Shown piece by piece: positions 8,980-36,653 of a DNA stretch of 64,000 nt (positions within the stretch are counted from its first letter, which is position 1; every line of letters begins with the position of its first letter). The stretch comes from Octopus sinensis (taxonomy: Eukaryota), in NCBI RefSeq assembly GCF_006345805.1, contig NC_043013.1, positions 24,676,001 through 24,740,000 on the forward strand, given 5' to 3'. The notes beneath the pieces were generated by a model. That model searched no databases. It was not told where the DNA came from and saw nothing but the letters and a program-made list of their open reading frames with translations. The translations under genes were made by a program, and so were the position numbers.

Positions 8980-9045
8980 TAAATCCTCTCTCCGCCACAG
9001 ACCGCTCCCTGCCAGTAGTCATGTGACATAGCCAAGATGGCAGAC
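8980..9045 (+). promoter_or_regulatory. Putative SPG11 core promoter/5' UTR with M-box/CLEAR-like GTCATGTGAC and YY1-like CAAGATGGC
   Basis: GTCATGTGAC at 9018-9027; AAGATGGC overlaps the start codon; pyrimidine-rich cctctctccgcc upstream. TSS unknown. Confidence 0.45.
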
Positions 9046-9239
9046 GATGGAGAAAGCGATGCCGACTTTTTGGAATACAAACTCTGCGCTTTCCAAGATG
9101 AGTTGTCTCTGGATGGAATTAAAAACATTCTGCTATGTCCTCGCTACCACATCCTTGTCATTCTGTATGACGATGGCAATTTACATGTTGTCCGGGCATC
9201 GGAGACCCGACAACGACTGAAAGCTGTCCCCAACGTCAG
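9037..9239 (+). CDS. SPG11: Spatacsin exon 1 (MADDGESDADFLEYKL...KAVPNV-R)
   Basis: ATG in strong context (gccaagATGG) in a locally GC/CpG-richer region; donor AG|GTGAGT at 9239/9240, phase 2, matching exon 2. Assigned by frame continuity with downstream, clearly spatacsin-like exons. Confidence 0.8.
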
Positions 9240-10204
9240 GTGAGTGGACTTTAATCGTCGTAGCTATGTTGCAAGTTTTTCCTTCTTCACTTAATGTAGA
9301 TTATTCCACTTGAGAGAACATCTGAACGTCTTAATTTCACTCTTCCTAGTTCTTATTCTGGTTGCAAGAATTCCAGACATCCGAACTATTGCTCTTTCTG
9401 CCCACTGGACATCAAACATTTCTCAGGACACGACAAATGTTTCAGCAGGAACTCTGAGTTGTCTGTTTTTATTGCGATCCTATATTGAATTAATTCGCAA
9501 ATACTAAATAGCAATGCAACGATGTTTTCTTGTACAAATTTGGATACAGTAGTACCTCAGTTTACGAACGCCTCTAATCACGAATAAATCGTACTTTATA
9601 TGTATGTACACACACACACACACACACGATTTATTCGTGATCAGAGTGGTTCGAAAACCGAGGTTCTCCTGTACTCGAAATCCTAATACTAAAGCCAACA
9701 ACGAATCGTTCAGAAACATTAAATTAAGAGGCACACTACATATTCGTTCTTTAATCGCTTGCATGCTAGACATGTATCTAATATTATATGCTACATTCAT
9801 AAACAACAACAAGAGTAGTATGTAAATAAAACCTTCTTATTCCTATAAACTGTAAACTACTGTGAACCACCACCTCCCACCGAACACTGCTAACGGTAAG
9901 GGCCAAGGACTCGCCCTTCCCTATCTTAGATGCAAATTGAAATGTAATAGAAGTATATTCATATATAATTGGTGTTACAAAATGTTTGTTTTCATCCATA
10001 ACATTGTATTTACTTTTTGCAGTTTTGGTCGTAAATATTTCAACGATGATTACGGTATTTTGGTTTTAAAAGTTACGGGAAGGTATAAACGTTCCAGATA
10101 GTGATCAGTAAATATACTACCAATATAGAGAATATAAATATTTCTGTCAATATAAAGATCCTCAGCCGGGAACAAAAACAAAAATTAACCAGCCTAGGGG
10201 GGTG

Positions 10205-10637
10205 TTAACGGATCTTTTCCTTTTGAACGGCACGTGTCAACACAATTTCCAGTTAACTAAACACTTTTAAACTTCGTATACTGGTTGAATGTGTTTATAA
10301 AACAGCATTTTTTCTTGGCTTATTGAGAAAATTCTATATGTTGTAACATATTTCCACTTTAATTTCAAGCATATCGGCAATTTTAACCAATCGCTGACCT
10401 CCATTTGGGGTGAAAACATTCCGTGTTGTATGAATATGTCCCTCGTTTAAGAAACAGATTGGGTTTATTTACATTTGCGAAGAAAAAAAGATACCCTTCC
10501 CCCACCTCTAACCCTAATTCTAACCCTAAATCTAAAATAGATTGAAATGCAATAGATCAATACTAGGGTTATAATTATGAGTGACAATTTCATACGACAC
10601 CGCTACGGAAAATGGGATTTTTTTCTAGCGGTGTATC
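10205..10637. mobile_element. Unclassified DNA-transposon-like repeat with a terminal hairpin
   Basis: Starts ggatcttttccttttgaacggc; contains CTAACCCT hexamer-like repeats; ends acaccgcta...tagcggtgt. Confidence 0.4.
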
Positions 10638-11040
10638 CTAGTGATTAGGGTTTTGATCACGATCGTATGATCATGGTTTCAATCCCTGGGCCAAGCAGTG
10701 CGTTGTGTTGTTGAATGACATAGAAATGTGTGCAGAAACTAAGCTCCGAAAGCAGGCCTGTCGTCAGACTTTAGTGCGTGGGGCAGCTTCAGAATATTCT
10801 GAGTGGGCATTAATTTGTAATATGCTTAAGTGGAGTTTTGAAATAAGTGTATCACTGTAAATCTGAGGGTACACCAAGAGAGCAGTGCTGTTCAGTGCAC
10901 CCCCTTAGTGACTTGCATGCTTCGAGGGATCAGATGTCGCGTGCTTGTTATGAATTATAAAATCCTATCATTAATTCCTTTGCACAATAGTAAATAGTAG
11001 ATAAAAATATAGTTATCTTATTTTGTATTGAGTACAAAAA

Positions 11041-14000
11041 TGTGGCATAGTGTTGAATGACGTTGATAGATGGATACTGTCTTCACCTAATATGAAACAA
11101 TACATCTTAATTGTTGGACAGCTGTGATTAACGGATTAGACGTTGAGCAGATATAAAGTTTGAATAAAAGCCTCCCTTGAACTAGCTAATGACAAATTTT
11201 ATTCAAGGTCTTTCCCAAACTTTATTATAAATGGATGCTAAAGTGTTTGAGAGGACCCTACCAAGCGACCTGACTAAGGAAGATTATTGGAGGTACCCTT
11301 AGTCCTTTGCAGAGCAAGGATCTACCCCATCGTGGAAGAATTTGAAACCATCGAGGTGGCAGTAGAACACCTGGACTCAAAGTTCATAAAGAAAAGTTCA
11401 AATATAATGATGCACCATAAACTACGAACTTGAAAACAAAAGGAAAAAGTGTCTATAGAAGAATTTATGTCAGGCCTTCAGGTGCTGGTCAAGAAGTGTA
11501 AAATCCCAGCCCTAATGGCAGACCGTTCCTGAGAAATTCTAATTGGTGATGCCTTTGTAGCTGGACTTCAATTACCATCAATCAAACAAAGGCTTCTCAA
11601 GTAATCAAACGACAGCTTAGAAACACTCTGTAAGCTTGCTCAAACCATGGAAGTGGCCATTGAAGACACTCGCAACCTATTGCAAGGCTCAGCTGGTATC
11701 GATCAACCACTAAATCAGCATGCTTTTGGTGCGGTGGAGACATCCATAAAAAAAATCAATGCCAGGCGAGAAACCGCACTTGCAAAAGGTGTCAGAAGAA
11801 TTGCCACTGGGAGAAAGTCTGCCTCTCAAAAAAACCACCAAGAAACAAATGTAACTTCCCTAAAACAGCAGCTATCACAGAGCCCCAGAGTGACTCAGAC
11901 AGTGGTGGGACCTTATCATCCATCACTTTAGCAGTAACAAACAGTACAGGATGGCTGGTACCCATTGAAATTAAGTACAACAATATACAAGCCATTTTCG
12001 ACAGGACATTTATAAAAGCGAATTATCTTGAGGTCTGGGGATTACACTATGATCGTACCTGGCCAGAAAAAGTTAACTTGACCAACAACACAATACTGGA
12101 GATTAAATGCAAATTCAGTAGTAAACTACAACTGGGAAATAACACATGTAACACTAATTTCCTTGTAGCTCCAGTCATAATCAGAATCAATATATTCAGT
12201 CAACACTCAGCAGTTGCAATTGACTTCAGGACACACTCAAACCTGTGTCATTCTGCCTGTCCATGTCAAGCCTAACATGTCCTGCATATAAACTGCTTCC
12301 TGGCATTGAGACCTCTAAGCTCAGACCAATTACAACTTCAAGACGCAAAGTTTATTAAACAAAAATAGACAAGTTACTTTCAGAGGACATAATTCAGGAA
12401 AGCTGTAGTCCTTGGTGAGCTCATTGCTTTGTGACATCTAATGGAGAGGAAAGACTGGTGATCAACCACTTGAATACTATAAATATCTACACACAACTGG
12501 ATGCCTGCCCTACCCCACAGATCAATGATCTTCTAAATGAAGTAGCAGCAAACAAGGTTTTCAGCAACATCGATATGACAGCTGCATATCACCAGGTGGA
12601 ACTCCTACCCAAAGACTATAAACTGACAGCATTCGAAGCAGGGGGGAGATTGTATGAGTTTAAATGCCTCCCATTTGGTTGCACCAATGCTGCAGCAATT
12701 TTTCAGTGTCTCAGGGATGAATTCATAAAAAGAAACAATCTTCAAAAAGCCTTTTCTAATCTAGATGACATCATCATAGCTGGCAAAATCATCATGAACA
12801 TGACGATAACCTCAGGAGATTTATCCAGGCAACTGAAACATCTGGCATGACCATCAATAAGAGCAAAAGTCAATTCTTTCAGAAGCATATCAGCTTCCTT
12901 GGACATATTATTGGAAATTCAACTATAAAACCTGACCCTAAAAGGTATCAAGCTTTGCTAGATATGTCAGAACCAAGAATATTGAGAGAATTAAATCGAA
13001 TAATAGGAATTTTTGCATATTATGCAAAGTGGATACCTAAGTGTTCCGGACTCACCATTCCACTTACAAGAGCCAGAGAGAATATCAACAAAGCAGGACT
13101 GCCAAAAGAAGCAAAAACAGCAATCACATCTTTCAAGACTGCATTGGTAAATGCCACTGGAATATCACTTCCTATTGAAACAGATGCTCCTGACCTAGCC
13201 TTGGGATGTATGCTATCACAAGGAAGGCCAGTGGCCTTCTATTCAAGGTCACTTTCAAAATCAGAAAAACACCAATCCATTGTCAAGAGAGAAGCCTGTG
13301 CAATCATAGAATATTTCCACAAATGGTGCTACCTAATACATGTTTTCTCATACTGCAACATCGTCACTGATCAATGCTCAGTGGCAATGATCTTCAATAA
13401 GCAAGTGACTTCAAAAATCAAAAATGAAAAACTTATATGCTGGTGCTTGGACCTCTCAGACACAAATTACACAATCTCTTACAGACCAGGAACTCAAAAC
13501 AAAGCAGCAGACGCGCTATCAAGATGTGCAGCAACAAGAGACACTACAACACTAATAACCTTTCACAAACAACTGTGCCACCCAGGAGTGACCCATCTAC
13601 TTCACTACTGCAAAGTACAAAACTTGCTGTTCTCCCTCAATGAAATCTGCAAAATGACGTCAATTAATACAGGTATCGAGACCTTGGGAGCACCTCTCCG
13701 ACTTTGTTGGTCCCCTGCCATCAATCACACAATACCACCACTTATTGGTAGTAGTCATTGAGTACTTGAGGTACCCTTGTAAAGACATGAGTACCAAAAC
13801 AGTCATTTCCCACCTGCTCCACTTCTATTCATCGTTTGGATCATCAAGTTGTATCCAATCTGAAAGAGGAACCCAATTTCAGGACTTCTTTCACGTTAAT
13901 GGGATAATAAAAACTAGAACATCTTTCTATCGACCTCAAGGCAATGGCCAATGTGAAAGGACCAACAGTACCTTCATGAAGACCATAAATCTAGCACTTA

Positions 14001-14430
14001 GTTCCCTACAACTAGATAATGGACACTGGTTGACAGTTCTTCCCATTGCACTATCAGCCATGAGAGGAGTCCTTTGTACAACTGCCAACACGACCCCACT
14101 CCATGAATGAATGTTTAAATTTTCAAGATCGTCGATAGTGGGAACCATTCTACCTGAATCCCTCCAGAATACTAGAAGTACAATACTGCATTGTCAACAT
14201 CTCAGAAATAAAGGGTATCCACTTATAGAAAACGATAAATTGTTGGAGATGATTTGTTCCCACTTTGCATACGTACAATTTGGAAACAGACGAATAGATA
14301 CAGTGTCAACACACAATTTTGCTCCAACAGGACAATCTTCCAATCAAGGAAGCAAAGGTAATGCACAAACACAACCAGTGCCAACTACACAGAGTTTGAT
14401 ATGGAACAAGAAAATCCACAAATAATAAGT
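11041..14430 (+). mobile_element. Degenerate Ty3/Gypsy LTR retrotransposon in SPG11 intron 1
   Basis: Gag remnant (DAFVAGL; Zn-knuckle-like Cys cluster near 11760), RT (IDMTAAYHQV, LPFGCTNAAAIFQ, NLDDIII), RNase H (ETDA...VAFYSRSL), integrase (QLCHPG, RPQGNGQCERTN) in RT-RH-IN order, with stops and frameshifts. TG...CA segment with AATAAA at ~11041-11193 may be a 5' LTR; no matching 3' LTR seen. Confidence 0.9.
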
Positions 14431-15500
14431 CAACAAGGAACCGATCCCAACAGTACACCAACAGAAGCAATATATCAACAAAGGAATGGTCTCACTTGGC
14501 TTCATAGGCCTTCTCAAGTACAGCATATTTCATTAAATATAATCTGTTTTGCCCATTTTGTCTTTTTTTTTATACAGCATGTTGTTAGTGAGCCTTCGGC
14601 AAGATTCCACTGCACAGAGTATGTGCAGTTGTACATGCAACCCAGCATAATGTCCCAGGCACCTTCATTCAGGGTCCGTCAGCAAGCATGGTTCAAAACG
14701 AACTGAGTTGATTTATCTATTTGTGGCTAGTTTAAGGCACAAAGGGAAGTGATGAAGGATGTATTAAAATCCAATATGGCTATAAAGTTTATTTTTAGGA
14801 CAACCTCAACTTAACACCAGTGCCAGAGTGGAAATTGGGAGTTTAATATATTTGAAATTAGGCTTAAGTTTACCTGAATGTTCTTATATGTTTCTTTTTT
14901 TTGTTTTTTTCTATGGATAAAAGGAGATTGAATAGAATTAAACTAAGTTACATTGATGGGGGTTTTATCAATATATTTTTATGATGGTTCACTTTAAGGT
15001 TATTCAGTTTCCATATATGTATGTGTTGCTGTGAAAAACCCAGAAGATATTTCATGCTAGTGATAATAATGATATTTAGTTGAAAGTTAGGCCAGATAAT
15101 ATCCTAATATATACCTCTCTCTCATTCAGCAGCCTTTGTGTATAGGATATCATCCTACCTGACCTCCTTCATGAAAATGCTTAAAGGTTTTTCCATGCAG
15201 GTATCAACATCTCAAGGCCTGTTCTAGTCTACTGTTAAGTAATTGGCTCATATCTTCTATGCACGACTCACATCTATTTCTCCCTGGTCCATATGTTATA
15301 GCCATACTAATTTTATCCACCTAGCTCTTACTAATACAACAACAACAACAATGAGCATTTTGTTGGTTTTTAGACACAAATTCAATTTCTCTTGTCAGGA
15401 AAAGCTACTAGCAGCAAACTGGTACTTTTTATTTTGAAACTACTTAAGGTAGTAAATTATGTTTACTAATAAACATAAAATGTCACTAATTCTTTCTCTT

Positions 15501-15531
<31 letters not shown>

Positions 15532-15535
15532 ATAG

Positions 15536-15687
15536 ATCAATTCATTATGACAGCAATGAACATCATGAAACTACATTGTGTATGCACCACATAGATGGTA
15601 AATTGTCAGCTTTCTCCTTGGAGGATGATCTGAGATATCTTTTTACTTGTGAGGAATCTGTATTGGCTCTGGTGTTATGTAAAGAAG
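15536..15687 (+). CDS. SPG11: Spatacsin exon 2 (SIHYDSNEHH...LVLCKE-G)
   Basis: (CT)n polypyrimidine tract then TATAG|; donor G|GTAAGT; phases 2 to 1 fit both neighbours. Confidence 0.8.
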
Positions 15688-16034
15688 GTAAGTATTTTCA
15701 CTTATTGGCACTGACCTACTATTGTAGAATGCCTCCGAGTAGTGTGGTTTTGTGCCACTGAATACGTGCTTCCATTATGTCTTATATCAGATTATCTCGC
15801 TATATATAGCCATGACTTCCACTTCATATTCAATAGTTTATAAAAAGACACCGCTAATAATTTCACTAATGTTTGAATTTACACAATCATCAAGTTAATG
15901 AAAAGCATCTGTAAAACATTCTAGAAAGTCTCCTTCAACTTGTTTCTCATTTTACTGATTGTCATTCTAAATTATTTTGTGGCTTGGCATCTTAAATCTA
16001 CATTGACTTTTGTATGTTGTTACTTTTTAAACAG

Positions 16035-16325
16035 GTCTTGAACTATTTAAATCTACTGCACCTTATTTACTTGGTTATGCACACTCTTCAGTTATTTTAC
16101 TTACCAAGAAAAGGCCAACTAATTGCCAAGCTAGTTCTGATGTCATCACTACTACTACTACTCTTACCATAGCTTGTGTGTATTTTACCAGTGAAGCATC
16201 ACAGAAACCCTGCTGTCAGTACACTATTGTATTATCAGACCAATTTGAAGAGGATCATATTGTGCCATCTGTTCAACTTTATGAGTCAACTATATCTGTT
16301 CTAGACTGGCCACAACACACACTTT
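16035..16325 (+). CDS. SPG11: Spatacsin exon 3 (GLELFKSTAP...SVQLYESTISVLDWPQHTL-Y)
   Basis: Acceptor ttttaaacAG|; open frame includes an (ACT)5 poly-Thr; ends at T|GTATCCTTTT (U12-type donor). QLYESTISVL aligns with recalled human QLCRGILFVL. Confidence 0.75.
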
Positions 16326-16790
16326 GTATCCTTTTCAAAGTAAATATCTTTCGAGTTGTTTTAAATCTGAGGTTTATGCTATTTCATAATTGATATTTCT
16401 ATGCTATTGCTTTGTATTCAATCACTGCATTAGTCAGTATTTACTTCAAAAGTCAGTGGAAACAGTTCAGACACTAAAATACTATATTGTATACTTCCAT
16501 TTTTTTTTTTCCTAATTCAGTTACTCATTGTTTGGTATTTAAATGTTGCCACATTCAATTTGAACTTATATCCTCCTATAGAGTAATAAAACTAGCACCA
16601 GGACTAGAAAAGTTGTCATATATCTTTGACAATGCATCACTAAAGAGTTCTCTTAACCTAATTTTTTTCTTTGTTTGTTTGCCAACCCCTTTACAGTGTA
16701 TACTGCATGCATTGTTTTTTTTTGTGGCAACAACACTAGAGAGGTTGTCTTGTGGCTATGTGCAGGACTAAAGGGAATTCTCAATCTTAA

Positions 16791-17010
16791 CCCTTTCGAT
16801 ATTGTATTTCTGTAGAGATGCTCTGTGTTTCTTTCAATTACTTTAAATATAACAAATAATTCAGTGAAATAACTTAGTTATCATTAAGCTACTGTTAGGA
16901 ACATAAATTGTGACTTAAGTTTGGTGGAAGATTTTAATTCAAAACTTATGAAAACAAGACATTTGTACTCAAAGCCAGAGCCGGTTTCAGCTGGGTTGGT
17001 AATGAAAGGG
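16791..17010. mobile_element. piggyBac-like MITE
   Basis: TTAA|CCCTTTC...GAAAGGG|TTAA; reverse-complement copy at 58984-59198. Confidence 0.75.
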
Positions 17011-18081
17011 TTAATCTTTACTTACTTACCTTATCAGTCAGGAGAATGTTTCAAAGGGGAGCCTCTTATCATGGCACTGGCATAGGAGGGTGTAGTGTAG
17101 AATATATGTTCAGTATCAAGTATTGAAATGGCAGCATGTATATTATTAGAAGAATTCTTACAAAGAAGAAGAATAAATTTAGGAACTATATATTTACTAC
17201 ATAAAAACATTTTTTATTCATTGGTTGTTGATGAAATATAATCAAAATGTAGAATCTAGTTGAATGAAGTAATCTATGCAAGGAAGTTCAGAAATGTAGA
17301 AGTGGTGGTTTTCAGTCATGTGGCATAGAGAAATTGACAGGCATAGCAATGACTTGAATGGCTCAGAGTCTAGTCGACTAAGAAGCAAAGAGCAGGGTAA
17401 GTAAGCTTTATTAATGGGACGCTAGACATCCTAGAAACTTCCAAGAGAAACGCGAAGCTTCTTGAATAATTAAGAATTACCTCTCGTGAAGTAGAATCTT
17501 CTGGGAAACTTATTAAAGGGAGATTACTCTATAAAACTTCATGTAAGATAGATCATTCAACTATTTTAGCTACACTACTACAAGGGCTTGTCTTGTAAAT
17601 ATAGAAATATAGAGAGCATTCAGTATCCGAAGATGTGTACATTTACTCAAAGTAATGTGCCCAAGGAGGGGAACAGCAAAGAGAGCAATAAAAAAGAATG
17701 ATTAATATGGATGTGTGAAAGGAGTAAGAGTATGGTGGTAGAGACAGAAGGGTTGGGGTGATGATAGGGGAAGTTCGACAGGTGATAGCAGAGGTGGACA
17801 AAATGAGTAGGTGATGGGTGACCCTGGAGTGAACTGAGAGTGATGGCTGGCAATACAGGTTTGGTGAACTGAGAGTGTATTGGGTACAAAAACCAAAAAT
17901 AATCTCATTCAAACTCATCCTGTCCTTGATCAATTTTGCAATCATCCTTTCTGTAACTTACATAACCTGGTTCAACAGTTTGATGCCTCTGTAGTTTCCT
18001 TTCTCTGCTGCTACTCCTTTGCCCTTGTATTAGTTTACAATGTCATTGCGGCACCAGCCATTGTGTGTGTGTGTGTGTGTG

Positions 18082-18870
18082 TATCATCATCATCATTTAA
18101 CATCTGTTTTCCATGCTGGCATGGGTTGGAGGATTTGACAGGAGCTGGCCAGCTGAATTGCACTGCCCAGTCTCCGTGTCTATTTTGGCTGGATGCCATT
18201 CCTAATGCCAACCACTTTACAGAGTGTGGACTGGGTGCTTTGACACAGCACTGGCATGGGTGTGTTTACGTGACACTGGTATGGGTGCTTTTTACATGGC
18301 ACCAGCACCTATGAGCCCACAAGATTAGGAATGCTCAGCTCTTGAGGGGATGCAGGGATGCAATCTGTATGCAAGGGCAGCCATGCTTTTACTTAACTTG
18401 ACATATCTTTTCAAGCACAGCAAACCCCCTAGAAACTCAGTCCTTGTCATCCCCTCTGTGAGTCCCAACGTCTGTAGATCATTTCTCACCACTTTGTTCC
18501 ATATCTTCCTGAGTCTACCCTTTCTACATGTTCCCTCTACAATTAGAGATCAGCACCTCTTGATGCAACTGTCTCCGTTCATATGCATTACATGACCAAA
18601 CCAGCACAGTCTTCTCTCTTGCACACTGCATCTGATGCCCCATATACTCAGTTTTTCCTCTCAAATCACTTACATCCTCTCATACATGCACACTGACATT
18701 ACCTATCCAATGGAGCATGCTATCTTCATTTCTTTCAAGACTCTGCATATCCTCAGATTTATGTATCTAAATCATTTCTTTTGCACATGTTCAATGATAC
18801 TGCTGAAACTCATTAGGTATAACACCTTCCTGTGTTTACTTGCTTAAGTATTTGGATGACTTGTATGTAT
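18082..18870 (-). mobile_element. RTE-clade LINE 3' portion
   Basis: Same tail and 3' UTR joined to a degenerate RT C-terminus. Confidence 0.75.
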
Positions 18871-20396
18871 CCTACTTCACTAGATATTTTGAGCATTTAG
18901 CTCATTAAAATTGATGGGCCAACAGCTTTCCTTACCTTCATATCCTTAATCATTCTATCTATCATGCTGCTGCTGCCAAGATGAATTGCTTGTCTCTCAG
19001 ATGGGTCAGCATGCAGTAGACTTTCTTCTCATGCAATCTCCTCGTTCAGCAACCTCTCATTATAATGCTTGCTACTTTTCCATCAGCAGTAATGGCAGGT
19101 GTATACTTATCATTCAGATATACTTTTTCCTTTTTCTCTAACACACTGTCTTGCAATCTGAAACACCTCACACCCTCACATCACAGAACATATTCAGATC
19201 TCTTTCTTTCTGTTTCTTCCCTTCTTGATTGTAGTGAAGTTGCTGATGATCGTCTTTAAGGTAATCTGTTTAAGAGTCTCACAGAAGAGCTTATTCTGGT
19301 CGTCTGCCAACCCTAATCGTGAAGTATATACAAAAATAAATACTGTTGCTTAATTATTCTATTGCACATTCTCACTGCCTCATTTACTTTATTCATTATT
19401 CTGAAGAATTTCTATCACTGTTTCTTGCATGTGAGAAGTTTGACCCTAGATCCATTTCATCTTACCTCTTGTACGTAGCACATATTCACCTGAATTCGCT
19501 CCAGCATCTCCACAATCTCACCATTGATGATGGCAACTCTTAGGTTTGTGAACTGACAGGAAGAGGAGAATTTCAGGTAGTAATTTTCTGGTCTGCTGTT
19601 TCAGTTCTGCACCATTAAAAAAGGAGGAAGTTTGTGTAGCTTGCTGACAGTTGCAAAATTTGCACACATAGTTATATTAGTCTTCCTTTCAATTGATTTG
19701 CTATCATTAGCTCACATTCCAAAGCTTTACCAGTTATTACCATAACTGCACTTACTGCTACTACTGTGTGTACTGCTTCAGCTAGTAGATGTTATCAGTC
19801 CAAGGTATATGATGTGTATGTAAGTACTAAGTCAACAATGTCTGTCTCAAAGGAGGGCTGATGCTCTCTTAGTTACTAGGAGAGATTTCCAGTAATTGAT
19901 GGTGAAGTGGGCAGGTGAAAAAAATTGGAAGTAAAACCAACACAAACAGCTCATGTGTAAGTCAACTTACATATCTTTCAACAAAAGTCAAGATTCAAGT
20001 GGCAGATCTATGTTTGAGCAAGCCTGTGTAAAATGGAGAACTGGATGGGATGATTGATAATTAGAAAGAGAAAGGAACAAAATTTTAAGTTTACAAGTTT
20101 GTAAGCGTAAGTTGAGGTAAAGGCAAAACTTCTGCTAAAAAATAATAAACTTCAATAATATATGTACTGACACAGCAAAACAAAACACAATTTACCATTA
20201 TGTCACATGCTTCAAAGAAATCAAGTTTAACTAGTTAGTCAACTCCTGCAAGAATATGTTTTGGTACTGAAAAAAAAAATGGCTGCAGTCAAATGACTGA
20301 AACAAGTAAAAGGTAAAAAGTAGCTTGTTAAAGTTTTTTGTAGTTTTACAAAACAGGAAAAATTTTCCTTGTAGTCCTTAACTGAATTTTATCCAG

Positions 20397-20943
20397 ATCT
20401 ATATGATAGCAGTGATGGAGTATGTTACCTTCAGGTTGATCTTTGCTCTGTTGTTCATCTCTGTAGCAGTATGCCCCGGTTTTGGTGTATGTCAAATGAT
20501 GTTGCACATCTCTTCCTTATCACTGAAATAAACTCTGCCATCTGCCTCTCTTTGAAGGATTTATACACTTTATGTCCAGCAGACTGCAAATTCTTTTTTC
20601 CATCGGATAACCTTTCACAAGACAGAGAATACAAAAAGTGGATACGCATTCATAAATATGGTTATTGTTTGCCAGTGATCCAAAGAGGCCAGTTTTCTAA
20701 TGTATCGTGTCTTGGAAAAGTTGTTAAAAGAAGAGTATCTGGATTGAAAAAATGTCTTTCATCAGTAACTCTGGATGACAAAATTAAAGTAGTACAGCTT
20801 CCAGAATTCCTAGAGCAACATAGTGTCAAAGAGATTGCTTTGTCAACAACATTAGCAAAAGTGCTGTTCTCCAAGAGAGATAACATAGATCTTTCAATTC
20901 TGTGGCTCTGTGACTTTACAACAGGCAATGTCAAGTTAAAACG
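20397..20943 (+). CDS. SPG11: Spatacsin exon 4 (LYDSSDGVCYLQVDL...WLCDFTTGNVKLK-R)
   Basis: YDSSDGVCYLQVDL matches recalled human FDVVDGTYVAHVDL; SNDVAHLFLITEINSAICL matches SQDLDVAVIVSSSNSAVAL; donor CG|GTGAGT. Confidence 0.85.
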
Positions 20944-21839
20944 GTGAGTTGGGTTTTTACATTGAAAATAGAAGAAATTTCTTACCAATACATCTGATAT
21001 CTTTTGATTTTTTATTTATTTATTTTTTTTAAGAAATTAGATTTATGTTATCAAAAAATCTCATCATTGTTGTTTTCTTTCAGTGTCCATGCTGGTCATC
21101 GCTACTCAGCTAGATGGATCATGAGACCACATCTCACTTTGTCTCTCTCTATGCCCCATTTCCCTGCCTAATCTCAACCACTTTACAGAATAAATTGGGA
21201 GCATTATCATGATGCCAATACTAGAAAGGCTGTTGCATCTTTGACAAGAATAAAGGGTTCTCTCAACTCTACACTTAATAGTGTATATTGAGTGCATTTT
21301 ATTGTGACACCAACACTAGAGAAAATAGAGTTGAGATGGTGGATAGCTAGTGGTGGGTAATAGTGAGAGTGGATGATAGATATTGTCACTAAATGGCTTG
21401 TGAGGAGTATAGGGAGAATGTATGGGGTACATGCAAATTTAATTCACTCCTTTAATTTTATACCATAAGTTGTTGAGAGAACTAGAAATATAAGGATGTT
21501 CATTGAAATTACTAGCCACAAAGATAAGGTCACTGTCATTTATCTTGGAAGTGGCCTACAAAAGAGTGTCATAAAAGCAGTCCTTTTGTTCATTTGGCAG
21601 GTCTGCTTGGAATGCATAGGCAGAGATGATTGTAGCTGTGCTATTCTGCAAAACTACTCTGAGCTTAAGTATCCTATCACATATTCTGACTACTTCAATC
21701 ACCTTATGTACCCATTTCTCTGCTAGAAGTATGCCAACACCTACTCCATCACTGTTGCACTACCAGAAGAATTTATACCTATGCCTTTTGCCAGTGAAGA
21801 ACCTGGTTCAAGATCCTCTTCACTGAACTTCCTGGATGC

Positions 21840-22090
21840 AGCACACATCAACACATCTCCTTTCAAGCATCTCAACAATCTTACTTGACCTACCTTTCAA
21901 TGTTGCCTACATTGACAGTGCCAACTCTGAAGGGGAGGGAGAACTGCAGCCCTCGGCATCTGAAAAGAAGGTTGTAATGAGCATTTGCCAACGGACATGA
22001 CATGGCAGTTGTCCTCACATTCAATCCACCATCATTTGTGTTACACTTGCTACTGCTGTTGGATGTGAGTGCTACACCACCATTAGTACA
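21840..22090 (-). mobile_element. RTE 5'/endonuclease N-terminal fragment
   Basis: FRVGTVNVG motif. Confidence 0.55.
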
Positions 22091-22290
22091 GCAGTGTAAG
22101 TACAAATACCGATAAATATATAAAGGTTAACTGGGTTAGTGTTAGTACAAATACCATTTGATATATCATTATTGAGTCACTTCTTTCAGTATAGTGGTTT
22201 GTCGACCTCTGTACATAAGTGTTAATAGTTATGATATACAGAGTATATGTAGAGGAAAATTAAAATAAACACAATTACAAATTATTGGTT

Positions 22291-22423
22291 CCTATGGATG
22301 TTTCACCATTGCAGTTATTTGGAATTCAGCATTCGGTGTTCAAAGCGCATTTGAATGCCTAACTGCAATGGGTAGGCATCCGTGCTGTGATCCAAATAAC
22401 TGCAGTGGTGAAGTATATGTAGG
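22291..22423. repeat. Inverted repeat with two internal hairpins
   Basis: TTCACCATTGCAGTTATTTGGA / TCCAAATAACTGCAGTGGTGAA, 21 of 22 complementary. Confidence 0.8.
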
Positions 22424-22646
22424 ACCTTATAATTTATACTTGTGATTATCTTAATTTTCCACTAAATATATGTATATAAATGTATGTATGTGTGTATGTA
22501 TGCATATCCATGTGGGCGTGCAAGTGTGTTTGTGTTTATATATATATGTGTGTGTATGCACATGTATATTTGTGTGTATGTATTTTCTGTGCATGCTTAA
22601 GTATGTATATTTTCATAATCTTATTATATTGTCGTTTGATATTCAG

Positions 22647-22770
22647 TTTTAAAAAAGAGACTGGTCTCCTTGTACTGGGTATGGAAAAATGTCACCCACC
22701 TCTTATCCTAAAAGAAACTGGAATATTTGCAATAGTTGATGAGCTTCACCAAGAGGAATTTGTGGATAAG
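22647..22770 (+). CDS. SPG11: Spatacsin exon 5 (FKKETGLL...HQEEFVDK)
   Basis: Acceptor attcAG|, donor AAG|GTTTGT; HQEEFVDK resembles human TQEEFLNR; phases 2 to 0. Confidence 0.85.
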
Positions 22771-24060
22771 GTTTGTTGTTTATTTATTTGTATATATTGT
22801 AAACTTGGATATCAAAATGCATTTCATCCTTCTTATTATTGTCTGAGAAGTACTGTTTGTAGCTTTCTCATGCTTAATGTGATTCATACAGAATTGATGT
22901 GTTGCATGTATCACTTTTGATTAAATATCATTATACAGTGCCATAGAAGGAAGACAAGCACAATTTGATCATGCAAAAACATACTTTTTGCTTGTTCATT
23001 TTCATGTCAAGATACATTTTGCCATTGAAAATTATATCTCATTTGAAAGTTCTGAATGTGAACTATTACCTTGTATAGTTTTGATCAAAATCAAACACTT
23101 ACATAACATTCTGACTCTGACTATAAATATGGTGAAAATGTGCAAAGTCAATAAAGAAGGTGGTATGCTGATAGTTCTTGTCAAACTGATGTATTCCTGC
23201 ACTGTGAGAGACCAAACTGAACAAATCCAAGGTTTCAAATATTGAGTTTGAACAAGAATTTCAAGAAACAGACAAGCTAATTACTAAATAAACATATATT
23301 CCTGCAAAAATATACACTAAATTGAGCTACATAAGTCTTCTAGAGTGCAAAATTAACATGGAATCATTGAGAATGTTGTTTATTCTCTCTCGCTGTCCAC
23401 ATTTTACCTGGCAGATATTCTTATAAATGTAAATTTTGTTTCTCTTTAGGAAATATTGGTCAAGTTTTGTCAATAACAACTATGTTGTGTTATGAATATT
23501 ATTTTGTAGACTATTAAAGTCTGGTATGATTTTTTTGGGTGTCTTTTTTTTGATTTTGCACACAGTTGGATTATGTATGGTAATGTTTACGTATTCGTTT
23601 TGAGTGTTTTTCCTTTTTCTCCTACTAACGAGTTTGCTGTACATTATGAATGTTTTTAACGACTTTTAATTTATGCTTTTCATGCTAAAGCGAGGATTAG
23701 TTTTCACAGTTTTCTTGTTTTTTAATCTAGATCTACATGCAATGGGAATTGAGAAAGGTACCAGGTAGTTGTGGGATGTGCTAGAAACAACTGCTAGATT
23801 ACCCTTGAATCGCACACCTTTTTGTTCGAAAATATTTTCAAGACATTTTTCCCTTTTTATCAAAAATCATCTGCGCATTTGTTATGATGATTCCTGTCGT
23901 TTTTAAGTGCATAGTGCAAAAAAAGTTAGCCAAAATTGGTCCAAAGGTTAGGTTTGGTGAGGTGATGGGGGTGAAAAAATTGTTAATCTTCAAAAATATT
24001 TACATTGTGTGGGTAGGGTAAGAAAAATATGTTTAATTTAAATTTGAATTGATTTTTCAG

Positions 24061-24211
24061 GTTATGACTTATGGTGGAGCTCGTTTCACTGATGAACTGT
24101 GCCAGATGAATCATTGGGGGCGTTGCTCATTACCCCTACGGGCTCTGGAACTTGGCTTAAAATATCGACAGATTGACACTGTCACCATATTCCTGCAGAC
24201 TAGACAGAATT
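24061..24211 (+). CDS. SPG11: Spatacsin exon 6 (VMTYGGARFTDELCQMNHWGRCSLPLRALELGLKYRQIDTVTIFLQTRQN)
   Basis: Diagnostic spatacsin motif (human LCHLNGWGRCSIPIHALEAGIENRQLDTV, recalled); canonical AG and GTGAGT sites. Not in the supplied ORF track because it is short. Confidence 0.95.
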
Positions 24212-24639
24212 GTGAGTATTGATATTCCTAGGTCAGTCCTATCCAATTATGTAGGTGTTCAAGATAGGGAAATGTATGCTTGAAATTTTTATTTTAATTT
24301 AACTGAATGGTTTTTTTTTGGGGGGGGGGGGTTAGAACATGGTGCTTTTCTATTTGAAATCCAAATGTGAAAGAAATGTTATATAGAAATAAACAACTTT
24401 GTTAACTACACAAATACACATTCAGAAGGAAAAGGGAGAGACAAAAATAGACAGACTGGCAAAAAGTCAGGAAGAATGAAAACCACTTAGTGTTTCCTAC
24501 CTAAAAGATTAAATTAACACAAAGATGCTATCTTTGACCTTTGAAACTGAAAATTAACATTGCATTGTGTCTTCTTAAGGAAGGCACATTATTCTGTTTG
24601 TCAACTGTAAAGTAGTTTATTTATGGGGTCAGTGGCATC

Positions 24640-25147
24640 AAGCCGAGTGAGACTATAGTCATGACCAATGCCAGTGTCTTGTAACTAGCCTGTTAAAAGC
24701 ACCCTTCACTCATTCGGCAATATACTGTGCTTGTGAAGACCTGTCAAAGTGAAATCATAGCCGTGGCCAATGCCAGTGCCATCTGACTGGCATTCATGCT
24801 AGTGGCATGTAAAAGGCACGGTTCAAGTGTTGGGCCTCTTGTAGGCTGTGAGAAGTGACCAAGACTTTTGACAATATACCGTGCTTCCAAGCCAAGTGAG
24901 AACGTAGTTGTGGCCAATGCTGGTGTCAGGTCAATGGCACCCTTGCCGGTGGCACGTAAAAAACACTCACAATACTCTCAGAGTGGTTGGCATTAGGAAG
25001 GGCATCCAGCCATAGAATCTTTACCAAATCAGATTGGAACCTGGTGCAACAACCCCACCCCCACCCTGGCTTACCAGTCTTCAGTCAAACCATCCAACCC
25101 ATGCCAATATGGAAAGTGGACATTAAATGATGGTAATGATGATGATG
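24640..25147 (+). mobile_element. RTE 3' UTR repeat copy upstream of exon 7
   Basis: Modules, then gagtggttggcattaggaagggcatcc...tail. Confidence 0.75.
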
Positions 25148-25326
25148 AGAATACATTAGAAAAGTAAAACACTTGCCCCAGCAGTTCCCAATACACACAT
25201 TTCCAGAAGTGCCTACACCACACAATTCATACAATAACCAAAATTTAACATACATTCTGCTAGTATTTAGATTTTGTTACTAATTAAAAGGTCTTTTTTA
25301 ATGAGTGTATAATGTATATTTTTCAG

Positions 25327-25763
25327 TATTCTCACATGAGAAAAAACCTGATGGAAATGAACAGAAAAATGGTAATGTAAATAGCTGCTTGCCCAAACTA
25401 CAGGCATTAGAACCAGCTTACCAACTGTTATTGCAAAGTATTGAAGATAACATGGCTGAACAACAGTCTTTGTTCTTTGCACAACAACTACTTGGTATAA
25501 TGTTAAATCATTTATATTCTGTGCTAAATGATATCCTTGCATTCAAGAATTCTTTACTAGACAATATTGCACTTGAAGTCTTGCAAGAAACAGAGTCAAT
25601 GACCCAAACAGTTCTACAGTATATTGCTAAAGTACGCACATATATGAATGCTTTTGGTTTGAAGAAACGGAATTCTCTGACAGATGATACTAAAACAGGA
25701 ATCTGCAATTCAATAGAGAGCAGCACAGCTGAGTACAATGAATGGTCAGAAATGGATGTGACG
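25327..25763 (+). CDS. SPG11: Spatacsin exon 7 (FSHEKKPDG...EWSEMDVT)
   Basis: Within ORF 25305-25790; acceptor tttcAG|, donor ACG|GTAAGA; phases 1 to 0. Confidence 0.9.
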
Positions 25764-25842
25764 GTAAGACCTTTTACTTCAGAAATCTGATTATGAAATA
25801 TAGTTTATTCAAGAGAAACCATCCTTCTCCTCCTCATTCATC

Positions 25843-26215
25843 ATCATCATCATCATCATCATCGTTTTGAGTCCGCTTTCCATGCTAGCATGGGTTGGAC
25901 GGTTCAACTGGGGTCTGGGAAGCCAGAAGGCTGCACCAAGCCCAGTTTGATCTGGCAATGTTTCTACGGCTGGATGCCCTTCCTAATGCCAACCACTCCA
26001 TGAGTGTAGTGGGTGCTTTTTACATGCCACCTGCACAGGTGCCAGACGAGTCTGGCAAACGGCCACGATCGGATGGTGCTTTTTATGTGCCAGGCGAGGC
26101 TGGCAACGGACACGAACGGATGGTGCTTTTTACGTGCCACTGGCACGGGGGCCAGGCGAGGCTGGCAACGGACACGAACGGATGGTGCTTTTTACATCCA
26201 CTTTCTATGCTGGCT
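25843..26215 (-). mobile_element. RTE 3' UTR repeat copy downstream of exon 7
   Basis: (CAT)n, then ctttccatgctagcatgggttggacgg..., then modules. Confidence 0.8.
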
Positions 26216-27497
26216 TCAGTTGGGTTGGTTGTTATGATCCAATAAGATTTTATCAGGAGTTACTTGTCTCAACCTTGTTTTATGCATATTGCATTTTGGC
26301 TTGTGTTCTGCTACTGCATGCTTTTCCCATCACTAACGATTTTACAGAGTGTCCTGGGAGCATTTTATCATGATAGCTCAAGTGAGATTTTTATGTTCTT
26401 ATCAAGACCAAAAGTCCTCTCCATGCTATCAGTTTTTACTGGTTTGTTAAAAGTTAGCAGATTGTACTGGGTACATTTTATCATGGCACTAGGACCAGAA
26501 TGGTTCATCTATCATCTCTTATGAATGTCCACATCTCAGAGGAGTGAAGACTTTTTACTCTTGCAGCATGTATGGCAACAACGTTTTGTTAATGCCATGA
26601 TGGAGAATAAAAGAATGATGGTAGAGATAGCACGACTGGGATGAGGAGGAGAGAGAAAAAAGTAGACAATGGTAGGATTAAGTGATCTATAACAATAACA
26701 AGTGAGCTGGAAGAAAATGAATGACTTATTGTCAGTAGAGAAAGGATGATTGTAGGATATGCTTAGTTCAAATAGATCTGATGCAATCCCTTATGAATAG
26801 GTACCAAACCATCCATCATTACATGGCCAGTATGCAGTACACAGGAGATGTATGATATGGAGATGAGAGAGATAACAGATGTGGACTTAACAGCAGATAT
26901 ATTATGCCATATATATTACACCTCTTAACCGCCATCACTACCACCATTTTTAATGTTCAAGTTTACGTTTGCACAGTTGTTGAGTCTTCTGCAGTTCTGT
27001 ATATTAACAATCAACACATTCATTTATCATCTCCTTTGTGTAGTGCAACATTTTGAGATCCGTCTGCATCACTTCATTTCAATACATCAATTCTGAAATA
27101 CTCAAAATATCTATTTTCAATTTTCTTCATTATTGTATTTCATTTATGTAGGCCCTCACAGACACTGACTTATGTTCAGAAGATTGCAGTTATTTGTAGA
27201 AAGATGGAGAAAAGTATTTATTATAGAATTTGGGAAATAAAACACTGCAGGATGATGAAAGAGAACAGCTGGTACATCAAATAAGTTTGTGCAGGGGTAG
27301 TGCATAGCTTGTTCATTGAGAAAATCAGACAATGTTGTAGCAATAGGAAAATCAAAACAGATCCCTCCCTTTACTTTCAAACTGTTCATTTTTGGGCTAG
27401 TTACTGTCATCACTAAACTCTTCAATCTTAAATGCTCAATACTTTCAAGTTGTATATTCCATCAACATGTTAAATTTTTCTCTTATTTTTATTTCAG

Positions 27498-27677
27498 GAT
27501 GCCATTGAAGATAGCATTAGAAAAAATACTGTCCCTATTGTCCAATACTACCTTCTCCAACAGAACTCTCCAGAATTAGCCAGCCTTTCTGAAGTTACTC
27601 GTTTAGGTTTACTTCAAGGAATTAAATATTTGATGAATGCTAAGTTTGATGAAGCATCACTACTCATATCAAATCTT
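27498..27677 (+). CDS. SPG11: Spatacsin exon 8 (DAIEDSIRKNTVPIVQYYLL...ASLLISNL)
   Basis: 180-nt open frame between atttcAG| and |GTAAGG; phase 0 to 0. Confidence 0.9.
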
Positions 27678-27798
27678 GTAAGGTTAAAAGTTTAAAATTT
27701 TAATTTTTACTGTTTTAAGTTAAAATTTGCTTAGATATTTTTCATAAACATCTATTTGTTTTTAAAATTATTTACTGGAAATATTATTGCTTTTCCAG

Positions 27799-27992
27799 GG
27801 TTATAAACCTGTAGAAAAATATTGGGAATTTGCCCTTTACACAAATGATTGCTTGTTAAGAGACTGTATTCTTAATTATTTCACGGAAACAACTGAAGAA
27901 CAGCAGAAATTAATTACTTTCTTCCATTTATTACAACAAACTTATCCTTGTATCTCATATGAAAAGGCTAAAGAAAATATTTTACCATTAAA
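27799..27992 (+). CDS. SPG11: Spatacsin exon 9 (GYKPVEKYWEFALYTNDCLLRD...ENILPL-N)
   Basis: Acceptor ttttccAG|, donor AA|GTAAGT; follows a 121-nt intron. Confidence 0.9.
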
Positions 27993-28309
27993 GTAAGTTT
28001 TGTTTATTATTTGAAATAGTTTTTATAAATGAAATTTTTAAAGTATCAAATTTTAATGAACAGTATTTTCCAAATGGTTTTTGTCAATATATTTGTGCAT
28101 GAGCCTGCCTCTCTGTGTATGTATATATGGCTTATATTTTTGCACCTTGCTAGACATTTGGACTCAGCATTAGCCTAGACAAGCAGCATTACTGCCTTCA
28201 TTTATGTATTTGCATACATACTTTATGCTCTTGATGGAGTTACAATACTCTGCATTCATATGAGCATTCAAAGTCTTTGACAGAAATGGGGCAGTAAGCA
28301 ACTATTCAT

Positions 28310-28600
28310 TGATTGTCTACTTCATGATTTCTAGGTTTGGCTCGCTGTCTTCCATTTTTTGGTTTCCTTCTTCTGTACGTTGGATATCCATTATTGCCAA
28401 ATTGAGTGTGAGAAATAAAATTCTTTGGATTTTTCTTTTTGTGCATTTCCCTTCCTTCATGCATAATGACTGAGGGTGTTTAGCACCACAAGAGCCATGA
28501 ACCATATACCACGATGTGATAGAGTGTCCAATCAGTAGCAGGATCAGGAATTTCTGTTGATCAATTTGATTCGAGTTTATTTTTGTGCATAGCCAAAGTA
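28310..28600 (-). mobile_element. Helitron Rep-helicase linker fragment
   Basis: MVHGSCGAKHPQSLCMKEGKCTK resembles the Helitron MxHGPCG...PCM..GKC motif. Confidence 0.7.
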
Positions 28601-29099
28601 AAATATGGGCATGAGGTAATCTGCCATTCCACTGTATACATGAAACAGCAAACTTCCCTAAAGATATATGACTTTGAAAAGAGGTGTATCATCTTATTTA
28701 ATTGTAAGTGAAAAACCCATGCTATGAGACCATGTCTATGGTGTGCCTGTTGATCAAGAAAGAGTTCCTTTTTATTTCAGGCCATTTTGGGTTACATGTA
28801 AAAGTTATAAATAAATCTGGCATTTGACAGGCAGTATGCCAAAGGAGAATTGAAAGTTTCAGTTTGAATGTGAATAAAGCTAGAAGAATAGCTATATCAT
28901 ATAAAAGAGTAGCTTTACGGAATCCAGGTGACTATGCGATGCACTGAGAAGGCCACAGATGAAATGGAAGACCCATTTGTCACAGTTTCTTTTGACATTT
29001 GAATAGGCCCAAGGAGAATTGAAAGATTCAGCTTCGAATCTTAACCAGAGTGAGACTACAACTACAGATTTAGGTTTACTCATCCTGTATGTGTGAATT

Positions 29100-29550
29100 A
29101 TATAAGGGAAAAACTTGTAATAATTGAAGTAGAAAAAACATGGATTTCATATACGAACTTCTGTTTGTTCTTCAAGTTGTGCAGTCCAGCAACTTTTAGT
29201 GTTTGGCCCTGAGTTTTGTTAATGCTCATGGCAAAAGAAAGTGGGATAGGAAACTGTAAGGGCTTAAATTGGAATGGGACATTAGGTGGTATAACTGGTA
29301 TGCGAGGAATGAAGATGTTGTCACGTTTACCACAACCAGTGAGAATATTTGCCTCAATGCACTTCCTCATAGGTTTGTGCACAATTAGTGTTGTACCACT
29401 GCATAATTTTTGTTGAGACAAATTTGGCAACAGCATAATATGGAATACAGAAAAAACATAATAGCTTCCAGAATAGCCTCCCTTGAACAATTTAATTTCA
29501 CTTTTTTGGACAAACACAAACTGACAGAATCTCTCTTTTATATATATAGA
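29100..29550 (-). mobile_element. Non-autonomous Helitron fragment with PIF1-like helicase C-terminus
   Basis: IPRIPVIP..VPFQFKPLQFPIPLSFAMSINKTQGQTL; begins TCTATATATATAAAAG on the minus strand, typical of Helitron 5' ends. Confidence 0.8.
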
Positions 29551-29822
29551 AGATTCGCCTGGTCCTCGTGCCGGTGGCACATAAAAAGCACCATCCGTTC
29601 GTGGCCATTTGCCAGCTCTGTCTGGCACCTGTGCGGGTGGCACGTAAAAAGCACCCACTACACTCATGGAGAGGTTGGCGTTAGGAAGGGCATCCAGCCG
29701 TAGAAACACTGCCAGATTTGACTGGGCCTGATGAAGCCTTCTGGCTTCACAGACCCCAGTAGAACCGTCCAACCCATGCTAGCATGGAAAACGGACGCTA
29801 AACGATGATGATGATGATGATG
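29551..29822 (+). mobile_element. RTE 3' UTR repeat copy upstream of exon 10
   Basis: Well-conserved copy with (GAT)n tail. Confidence 0.8.
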
Positions 29823-29855
<33 letters not shown>

Positions 29856-29908
29856 GAGAAAGATTTTCTTAAAAATTAATATCATGACTCATTTCAATTT
29901 CCTTACAG

Positions 29909-30126
29909 TGGCTGGAAAGTTGTGGACCCGATTGCTGCTTGCATGAGTATTGCACCATCATGTGTTAATATGAAAGCATCCTGTGGAGAAGTGAGCATTA
30001 ACAAACCTGAGGAATCTTTGTCTACTATAACCTCTCCATACAGTGATGTACAACTTGATTGGCTTTTGTCTTGGTCATATGATACCAGACATTTGGTTAT
30101 TCTTGATGGCAATATGACCAGTCAAG
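29909..30126 (+). CDS. SPG11: Spatacsin exon 10 (GWKVVDPIAAC...VQLDWLLSWSYDTRHLVILDGNMTSQ)
   Basis: Acceptor ccttacAG|, donor G|GTATCA; LDWxxxW motif resembles human LDWALWWDQ; phases 2 to 1. Confidence 0.85.
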
Positions 30127-30420
30127 GTATCAACATTCTTACTCTTTTATTAATCAAAATATCATCAGTGTTTAATGACTCTTGTCCATGTGAGCATGAT
30201 TTATCCAAATCTACCACATATCTTTGTGTGTATCATCTCATTCCTCTGATAATTTTTCTATATTAAATATTTTGAAATTTAATCTGCCATCTGAAGAACT
30301 CTTTAATCTAAGTTTATTTTGTTTGCTCTCTACTTTCATTTCATAAAACCTATCCATGTTTATGGTTTAGCATGGAAAGCGGACGTTAAATGATGATGAT
30401 GATAGATGTTTTCGATCTAG

Positions 30421-30512
30421 TTTGGATTCTTTGCAATCAAATTTGAATTCTTTGCAATCAAATTTGGATTCTTTGCCATCAAATTTGAATTCTTTGCAAT
30501 CAAATTTGAATT
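30421..30512 (+). repeat. 21-bp minisatellite TTTG(G/A)ATTCTTTGCAATCAAA, ~4.5 copies
   Basis: Directly visible; G and A variants alternate. Confidence 0.9.
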
Positions 30513-31685
30513 TTTCAATTGGTGCTCAAGCCTTGAAAAAAAAGGGAGTTAAACTACATCAGCCGTAAGGGAATACATGTCTATCTTATCTAACTCGTTC
30601 AGTAGGGCCCGCCAATTGATATCTGAAAAGTTCGATGAAATAACTCATGAACACTGCGATAGCTTCTACCAAAAGATGCTCCATTACGTCGACCGGTCTG
30701 AATGAGGAGAGATAATAAACGAATGATTCTTTTTCTATTATCTCCGCTTGTTCAGACCTGTCACCGTTCATATTCAGTCTCACCTACTACCGTCCTTATC
30801 ACTCAAACTCTCTACTATCAAAATGCCTATTTATGAGGGCTTGCATCCAATCTATTCACAACTAATAGACTATACCACCACTCTTTCTTGTTCCCTCTTC
30901 TCCAGGCCACTCATTTTTTGTCATTCATCACTTTATCCACTGTTATTATAATCCATTATGCAAGCAAATATCTATCTGCCATCACTGTCTCTATCTTCAC
31001 CGTCTCCCTCTTACTCTGCTTCTTTTTTTATATTTTGACTACTTTCATCCATTCATCCAAGTTCTTCTTTTCACATTACTCTCTCTCTCTCCTATTTATG
31101 CACTTAATAATGTTGCCTTACACAAATACAGGATAGTTAGGGTTCCCATGGTGTACAAGGCAACCACACTTATACTGGTGCCACAATAAAATGCACCCAG
31201 TACACTCTAATAAAGTGGATGGCAAATGAATGGAAGCAATCTTGAACTGAGAGGACCCTTTAGTCTGGTTGAAGGCACGACAATCTCTCTACTATTAAAG
31301 ATTTGTAGGTAGTGGTATTTTGTTATGCAACCATAACATACTATAAAGTACATTAAATGTTTTTGATGTTGATGATGATGATGAATACCACATTCTACTG
31401 TGTTAACAGTGCTTTCTACATTATTTAGTTAAGCTTATTTCTACAGATATTCTATAGAACTTATTGCCAGTACTGATTTTTGCTGCAACATTTCGTATTG
31501 AGACATCCGATGTAAACAAACAAAGAGATAGAAGACAAAAATGGGTAATGAGGGTATATGCCATATTTTGGTGGGGGCTTCTTGCCCCTCCATCAACACC
31601 CATCTAACCCATTCATCGCCTCCGAAACACATTGCTTTCATAGCCACTGCATACAGCAGTGTTAAATTATTGGATATACCAATTT

Positions 31686-33657: not shown

Positions 33658-33745
33658 TAAATCAGAATGATTCTGTAAAGGTACCTTCTTAATTTCATAA
33701 ATATAAATATTATTTATAAGCGTACATTATTTCTTCAATTTCTAG

Positions 33746-36552: not shown

Positions 36553-36653
36553 GATTAGCCCCAAGCAATTATCCTTGCAATACTTTGAGAGTAATGAAGA
36601 CATGTGGATGAAGATGTTTAACAGCTTTTATGCTTTATCTATAAACCCTTATG
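36553..36653 (+). CDS. SPG11: Spatacsin exon 13 (ISPKQLSLQYFESNEDMWMKMFNSFYALSINPY-D)
   Basis: Acceptor cttctAG|, donor G|GTGAGT; phases 2 to 1 fit. Confidence 0.88.

Follow-up and report, generated by a model that had tools for sequence, protein, structure and literature searches.

A very probable U12-type intron in octopus SPG11 and its counterparts in vertebrates

Introns removed by the minor, U12-dependent spliceosome are recognised by rigid sequence signals, and a 64,000-nt stretch of Octopus sinensis DNA (assembly GCF_006345805.1, contig NC_043013.1, positions 24,676,001 to 24,740,000 of the forward strand; hereafter the window, with positions counted from its first letter) raises the question of whether such an intron interrupts the octopus gene for spatacsin, SPG11, and whether it is the same intron that is catalogued as minor-class in mammals. 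An earlier note, made from the letters alone, had called a 4.07-kb intron of this gene (positions 16326 to 20396) an ancient U12 intron. The analysis described here indicates with high confidence that octopus SPG11 intron 3 is a U12-type (minor-class) intron of the GT-AG subtype, orthologous to the minor intron of human and mouse SPG11, a reading that draws on its splice signals, on the position of its borders, and on sequence conservation in other animals. The window features on which the argument depends are as follows.

9037..63202, plus strand: 5' part of SPG11 (spatacsin), 21 coding exons from the ATG at 9037, 1417 aa
16035..16325, plus strand: exon 3, ending in ...WPQHTL plus T, the first base of a split Tyr codon
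16326..20396, plus strand: intron 3, 4071 nt, GT-AG, phase 1, U12-type by its signals, the sole GT/GC/AT...AG/AC junction that fits the deposited octopus protein
16326..16334, plus strand: U12-type 5' splice site GTATCCTTT, matching the consensus at 9/9 positions
20375..20382, plus strand: branch-point sequence TCCTTAAC, matching at 8/8 positions, with candidate branch adenosines at 20380/20381
20395..20396, plus strand: 3' splice-site AG, directly after which coding conservation with a diverged octopus relative (L001, described below) begins
20397..20943, plus strand: exon 4, opening with AT, which completes TAT (Tyr216), followed by LYDSSDGVCYLQVDL...

Splice signals and the identity of the gene

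Exon 3 runs to position 16325 with ...CCA CAA CAC ACA CTT T (codons spaced), and the intron begins with GTATCCTTTTCA at 16326. Its first nine bases, GTATCCTTT, agree with the U12 donor consensus /RTATCCTTT (here and below a slash marks a splice border), while TCCTTAAC is a branch box of the TTCCTTRAY type lying within the usual distance of about 10-20 nt from the 3' splice site: 15 nt separate its second A (20381) from the last intron base, which places the two candidate adenosines 15-16 nt from the 3' end. The termini are GT (16326-16327) and AG (20395-20396), GT-AG being one of the two terminal pairs, together with AT-AC, found in introns of this class. Exon 4 then opens at 20397 with AT CTA TAT GAT AGC AGT GAT GGA..., and the joined exons read QHTL-Y-LYDSSDGVCYLQVDL, rebuilding a TAT (Tyr) codon that is split in phase 1. 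The donor, the branch site some 15 nt from the border and the AG that the earlier note had described are thus all in place. Only one of the 20 introns in the window carries these signals; the other 19 have GTRAGT-like donors (GTGAGT or GTAAGT) that match the U12 consensus at no more than 6/9 positions, and their best branch-box matches reach at most 6/8, a contrast that supports the U12 call. Donors of the AT-AC type (ATATCCTT) occur in the window at the chance rate and at none of its exon borders. The lack of a long pyrimidine tract, which the note had also listed, does not discriminate between classes, since the interval from -22 to -4 is 68% pyrimidine in intron 3 and 58-95% in the 19 neighbouring U2-type introns.

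The exon borders were set by mapping the O. vulgaris protein onto the window, with GT/GC/AT...AG/AC borders and exact translation required, which yielded 20 introns and 21 exons with one solution each. The resulting coding sequence contains no stops and shows 0/1417 mismatches to XP_029646985.1 (O. sinensis spatacsin isoform X1), and no junction other than 16325^20397 yields the octopus proteins on deposit. When the concatenated middle exons were compared with human spatacsin (PDB 8yad chain B, 2443 aa), four colinear segments aligned at E=2e-28, so that the assignment to SPG11 was borne out, as was the molluscan host, by the identity of the spliced sequence to the O. sinensis entry. A HMMER search with exon 4 returned a 2495-aa protein, 98% identical, which is O. 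bimaculoides spatacsin isoform X2 (XP_052830059.1) and whose 90% cluster also contains spatacsins of O. vulgaris and O. sinensis. The peptide ...QHTLYLYDSSDGVCYLQVDL... is likewise read in the models of O. bimaculoides and O. vulgaris. Other searches returned little: the N-terminal 278 aa found no match among PDB sequences even at E<=10, the 596 aa of the middle exons found none in a protein database that seems not to return spatacsins of about 2400 aa, and the joined exon 3 and exon 4 peptide produced a single short match at the level of an open reading frame (P0001), discussed in the following section. The expectation that standard predictors would mis-splice the intron did not hold, as the RefSeq models of O. 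sinensis and O. bimaculoides and the ENA models of O. vulgaris all carry ...QHTLYLYDSSDG...; transcript evidence may have entered those annotation pipelines. Use of 16325^20397 in mRNA is therefore supported indirectly, through the deposited proteins and through coding conservation that reaches both borders in L001.

The motifs themselves are not rare in DNA of this composition. The donor core GTATCCTT occurs twice in the window against 1.93 occurrences expected from shuffles, the second copy, at 56769, flanking a (TG)n run inside intron 18, and TCCTTAAC occurs three times against 2.06 expected. These counts are what would be predicted if the motifs were chance matches in AT-rich intronic DNA with no function. 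However, the evidence is positional rather than a matter of motif frequency, because both motifs sit exactly on exon borders that were set independently by the protein mapping; from the motif densities in the window, the chance that both are placed correctly is estimated at about 3e-9 per intron (donor about 1.5e-5, branch site within a 13-nt window about 2e-4). The same motifs recur at the orthologous borders in five other species, and the reading as chance matches is accordingly given a negligible probability.

Compared with the 19 U2-type introns of the window, intron 3 has the same GT-AG termini, a length within their range (88-6296 nt) and a similar load of repeats, and differs in that theirs are GTRAGT-like donors without a TCCTTAAC-like box at the right distance. 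Its resemblance to GT-AG U12-type introns in general lies in the rigid /GTATCCTTT donor and in the TCCTTAAC box 10-20 nt from the 3' splice site; it also stands alone among many U2-type introns, as such introns do, and its non-zero phase fits their known phase bias. No structural feature sets it apart from that class, and the one new element, as far as explicit description goes, is the host species.

Conservation in a diverged relative and in vertebrates

The match P0001 lies in a metagenome assembly, on a contig of 15 kb (L001; ENA ERZ21867824 contig ctg67778l, 1-15021), which is animal host DNA within that assembly and carries SPG11 exons 3-9 of a diverged octopus relative. Protein identity between octopus and L001 is 63% in exon 4 and 36% in exon 3 (the latter at 2180-2489 of the contig), and nothing inside the intron aligns by blastn. 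The orthologous exon 3 ends ...CAC GCA CTC T/GTATCTTTTA, giving the donor CTC T/GTATCTTTT, and after 2430 nt the intron ends TTCCTTAACTTAAAG/AT TTA TAT GAT ATT GAG GAT GGC, with the branch box TTCCTTAAC before AG/AT TTA TAT GAT. Codon, phase and branch box are thus the same as in octopus, the branch 8-mer having been kept despite an otherwise unalignable intron, and the donor differs by one change, at +6. The 13 codons that follow the AG are conserved, with synonymous differences, and the acceptor therefore lies at 20396/20397 rather than at the downstream CAG/G. Retention of the U12 motifs while the rest of the intron diverged implies selection on recognition by U11/U12.

For vertebrates, partial spatacsins (<=768 aa) and their genomic loci were retrieved with a human fragment verified against the PDB entry. 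Every usable locus, representing four species, has an intron with U12-type signals that interrupts the homologous codon between its first and second bases:

Sawfish (Pristis): donor ATT T/GTATCCTTT, branch box TCCTTAAT, 16 nt to the 3' splice site, intron 2120 nt
Turkey: donor ATC T/GTATCCTTT, branch box TCTTTGAC, 12 nt to the 3' splice site, intron 323 nt
Baiji dolphin (Lipotes): donor ATC T/GTATCCTTG, branch box TCTTTAAC, 13 nt to the 3' splice site, intron 1741 nt
Croaker (Collichthys): donor ATA T/GTATCCTG, branch box TCTTTAAC, 14 nt to the 3' splice site, intron 101 nt

In the croaker (Collichthys lucidus, locus L006, 4555-4655) the split codon of the 101-nt intron is TCT (Ser) rather than Tyr, and the U12-type donor and the TCTTTAAC box are retained. 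Two records were left out of the conservation evidence: a camel locus (L004), taken up below, and P0015 (Arvicanthis), for which no gene is on record.

That the octopus and vertebrate codons are homologous had been proposed from an alignment with a human peptide. The peptide was quoted correctly, 8yad_B reading ...LSSLGWIYIFDVVDGTYVAHVDL with Tyr223, and BLASTP of the octopus against the human N-terminus gave the same alignment as its best match, although at a weak E=0.10. Comparison of cephalopod with vertebrate N-terminal alignments by hhalign was far clearer (probability 99.5%, E=4.6e-23); it pairs octopus Tyr216 with human Tyr223 (...DWPQHTLYLYDSSDGVCYLQVDL against ...SSL-GWIYIFDVVDGTYVAHVDL), the local match being ...HTLYLYDSSDG against ...GWIYIFDVVDG. 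With this position homology, and with signals of the form GTATCC... (donor) and TCYTTRAY (branch box) in L001, sawfish, turkey, dolphin and a teleost, the proposal of an ancient phase-1 intron in the same Tyr codon gains firm ground. Orthologues without the intron, or without U12 signals at this codon, had been named as grounds for abandoning it, and both intron and signals are instead present in five other species. On this comparative sequence evidence, the position, phase and class of the intron have been kept since at least the protostome-deuterostome ancestor.

SPG11 is among the human minor-intron genes (PMC7507305), and a published catalogue lists one minor intron in each mammalian gene: in human, chr15:44657297-44659078, 1782 nt, with the 5' splice site TCT/GTATCCTTG and the branch region TTTCTTTTAACT; in mouse, 1106 nt, with the same 5' 12-mer and ACTTCTTTAACT (MIDB; Olthof et al. 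2019, PMC6717393, supplementary file 3). The catalogued 12-mer TCT/GTATCCTTG is identical to that of the Lipotes intron at GWI-Y-IFD. Because the 12-mer equals the dolphin's and the human protein shares GWIYIFD, the catalogued human intron would be the one at the Tyr223 codon, a placement that is indirect; nothing relevant to the human exon border came from searching the literature for c.667+/c.668- splice variants of SPG11. The octopus intron and its human and mouse counterparts are alike in gene, codon (Tyr223 in human, Tyr216 in octopus), phase 1, GT-AG subtype and the 5' core T/GTATCCTT. They differ in length (4071 nt in octopus against 1782 and 1106 nt), in the branch box, which is the full consensus TCCTTAAC in octopus and TCTTTAAC or TTTTAAC-like in mammals, and in the dispersed repeats that the octopus intron carries. 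Such conservation is in keeping with surveys in which the mollusc orthologues of human minor introns are for the most part minor as well (Olthof et al. 2024, PMC11347168) and in which molluscs are relatively rich in minor introns, O. sinensis having been included in the conservation comparison of a pan-eukaryotic survey (Larue and Roy 2023, PMC10639083).

Proposed removal of the intron and rival readings

Following the established model of minor splicing, U11 snRNA, within the U11/U12 di-snRNP, would pair with the rigid 5' splice site GTATCCTTT, and U12 snRNA would pair with TCCTTAAC, bulging A20380 or A20381. Choice of the 3' splice site would then depend on its closeness to the branch point (15 nt) and not on a pyrimidine tract bound by U2AF, and U4atac/U6atac-U5 would catalyse the joining of T (16325) to AT (20397), restoring the Tyr216 codon. 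For the SPG11 intron, experimental support for removal by the minor spliceosome comes from mouse, where ablation of U11 raises retention of the Spg11 minor intron (bioRxiv 10.1101/2022.10.04.510883). By analogy, the octopus minor spliceosome would remove intron 3, and it is reasonable to suppose that spatacsin output in octopus may depend on it.

The window also offers a second pair of splice sites in frame with the coding sequence:

16340..16345, plus strand: U2-like donor AAA/GTAAAT, 14 nt inside the intron, phase 0, probably cryptic
20422..20434, plus strand: U2-like acceptor ATGTTACCTTCAG/G, inside exon 4, phase 0

The real intron might accordingly be of the U2 type, running from AAA/GTAAAT (16339/16340) to TTACCTTCAG/G (20434/20435), with the U12 motifs a coincidence. 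Both of these sites are near the U2 consensus, both are in phase 0, and the resulting variant, 16339^20435, keeps the frame while replacing YLYDSSDGVCYLQ with CILFK and losing 38 nt of exon 4. Yet the peptide that would be deleted, YLYDSSDGVCYLQ, has a conserved protein counterpart in L001 (LYDIEDGTCFLQ, the DNA differing synonymously) and can be aligned with the vertebrate Y[IV][FC]DxxDG; the GTAAAT donor is missing from L001; in five further species the intron is placed at the Tyr codon; and the pair is used in none of the deposited models, 16325^20397 being the only solution that reproduces the octopus proteins. Splicing at these sites as the true intron is therefore judged highly improbable. 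A different possibility accepts the junction and assigns its removal to the major (U2-type) spliceosome, the motifs being relics of a class switch. Conversion of GT-AG minor introns from U12 to U2 is a known route (PMC7367187), and the GT-AG termini together with the 68% pyrimidine content before the AG would suit it. Against such a switch, converted introns lose the TCCTTAAC box, whereas both octopus motifs are full consensus and better than those of the human intron, which is classed as minor; the motifs have been retained in L001 although the intron has otherwise diverged past alignment; and GTATCCTTT is known to pair poorly with U1. A class switch is thus considered very unlikely. Much the same small probability is attached to a regulated use of the U2-like pair, in which octopus would toggle between minor and major removal of intron 3 and, for instance when minor-spliceosome activity is low, produce an isoform with CILFK in place of the conserved Y-x-x-D-x-x-D-G strand.

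Several observations weigh against the preferred assignment of intron 3 to the U12 class, or against its junction, and should be set beside the evidence above. The junction is deduced from deposited gene models and cross-species coding conservation, and the in-frame pair 16339/16340 and 20434/20435, which does exist, might see some use. L001 has two features that are marginal for U12 introns, a spacing of only 7-8 nt between the branch A and the AG, and T at donor position +6. The donor of the camel locus L004 reads GTGTCCTT, in a record whose assembly and annotation look faulty. Finally, an Rfam scan at the gathering thresholds was empty and no gene for a minor-spliceosome snRNA or protein lies in the window, the octopus machinery being known from the literature.

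The camel record has oddities of its own. At L004 (Camelus dromedarius CM016632.2, about 5230-5250) the donor is T/GTGTCCTT, with G for A at +3, and the annotated 550-aa 'spatacsin' has an internal segment duplicated and its normal N-terminus missing; the anomaly may have arisen in assembly or annotation, or the copy itself may be damaged.

Repeats, coding variation and significance

Among the species examined, the intron spans 101-4071 nt (101-2430 nt in the orthologues of the octopus intron). Self-comparison of the window by blastn places repeat copies within intron 3 at 16774-17015, 18062-18241 and 18378-18755, which explain in part why it differs in length from its orthologues. The interior of the intron is unconstrained, freely turned over and inflated by dispersed repeats. 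One of these repeats is widespread in the window:

18062..18241, no strand assigned: short dispersed repeat (about 170 bp), occurring in either orientation within SPG11 introns of the window, at least 12 copies

Its copies lie at about 1838-2004, 25852-26019, 29648-29815, 31694-31863, 44446-44614, 56919-56999 and elsewhere, and its translation reads like ...LDALPNANHS.... Intron 1 contains, at about 11600-14700 on the plus strand, long open reading frames with RVT_1 (E=5.5e-14) and reverse-transcriptase-associated RNase H (E=1.1e-17) domains, an insertion that resembles an LTR retrotransposon and is oriented like SPG11. Intronic open reading frames on the minus strand (48911-49658, 29101-29778 and 50075-50341) look by eye like transposase or helicase fragments of DNA transposons; Pfam gave no match at E<=1e-3 for these long non-gene frames.

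Two further differences among octopus spatacsins were observed in the coding exons. In exon 21 the window reads AGC AAA TAG GAG TAG CTT CTG ACA CAG/GTTAGT at 63195-63226, and the TAG at 63203-63205 ends the 1417-aa O. sinensis model. The O. vulgaris and O. bimaculoides proteins run on as ...YSKIGVASDTG..., which is the +1 frame of the window exon, one A fewer in the A-run being enough to shift the frame; the stop looks like either a homopolymer assembly error or a real frameshift, and the break in frame is the probable reason that RefSeq divides O. sinensis spatacsin among three models (1417, 436 and 327 aa). In exon 3, at about 16150-16170, a run of ACT (Thr) codons numbers five in the window and in O. 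sinensis, six in O. vulgaris (CAI9735249.1) and four, after Ala-Ile-Ala, in O. bimaculoides.

Taken as a whole, intron 3 is real and was correctly interpreted by the earlier note, but it is ordinary, being the orthologue of a known minor intron. Much was already on record: SPG11 is a recognised minor-intron gene, RefSeq annotates 16325^20397 for O. sinensis, and the surveys covered the species. U12 classifiers applied to cephalopod genomes could be checked against the intron as a positive control, and its junction could act as a marker of minor-spliceosome activity in octopus tissues. The conservation agrees with the published surveys of minor introns in molluscs (PMC11347168, PMC10639083), and the SPG11 minor intron offers a clean example of an intron in which one codon, phase and class have been held while the interior has wholly changed.

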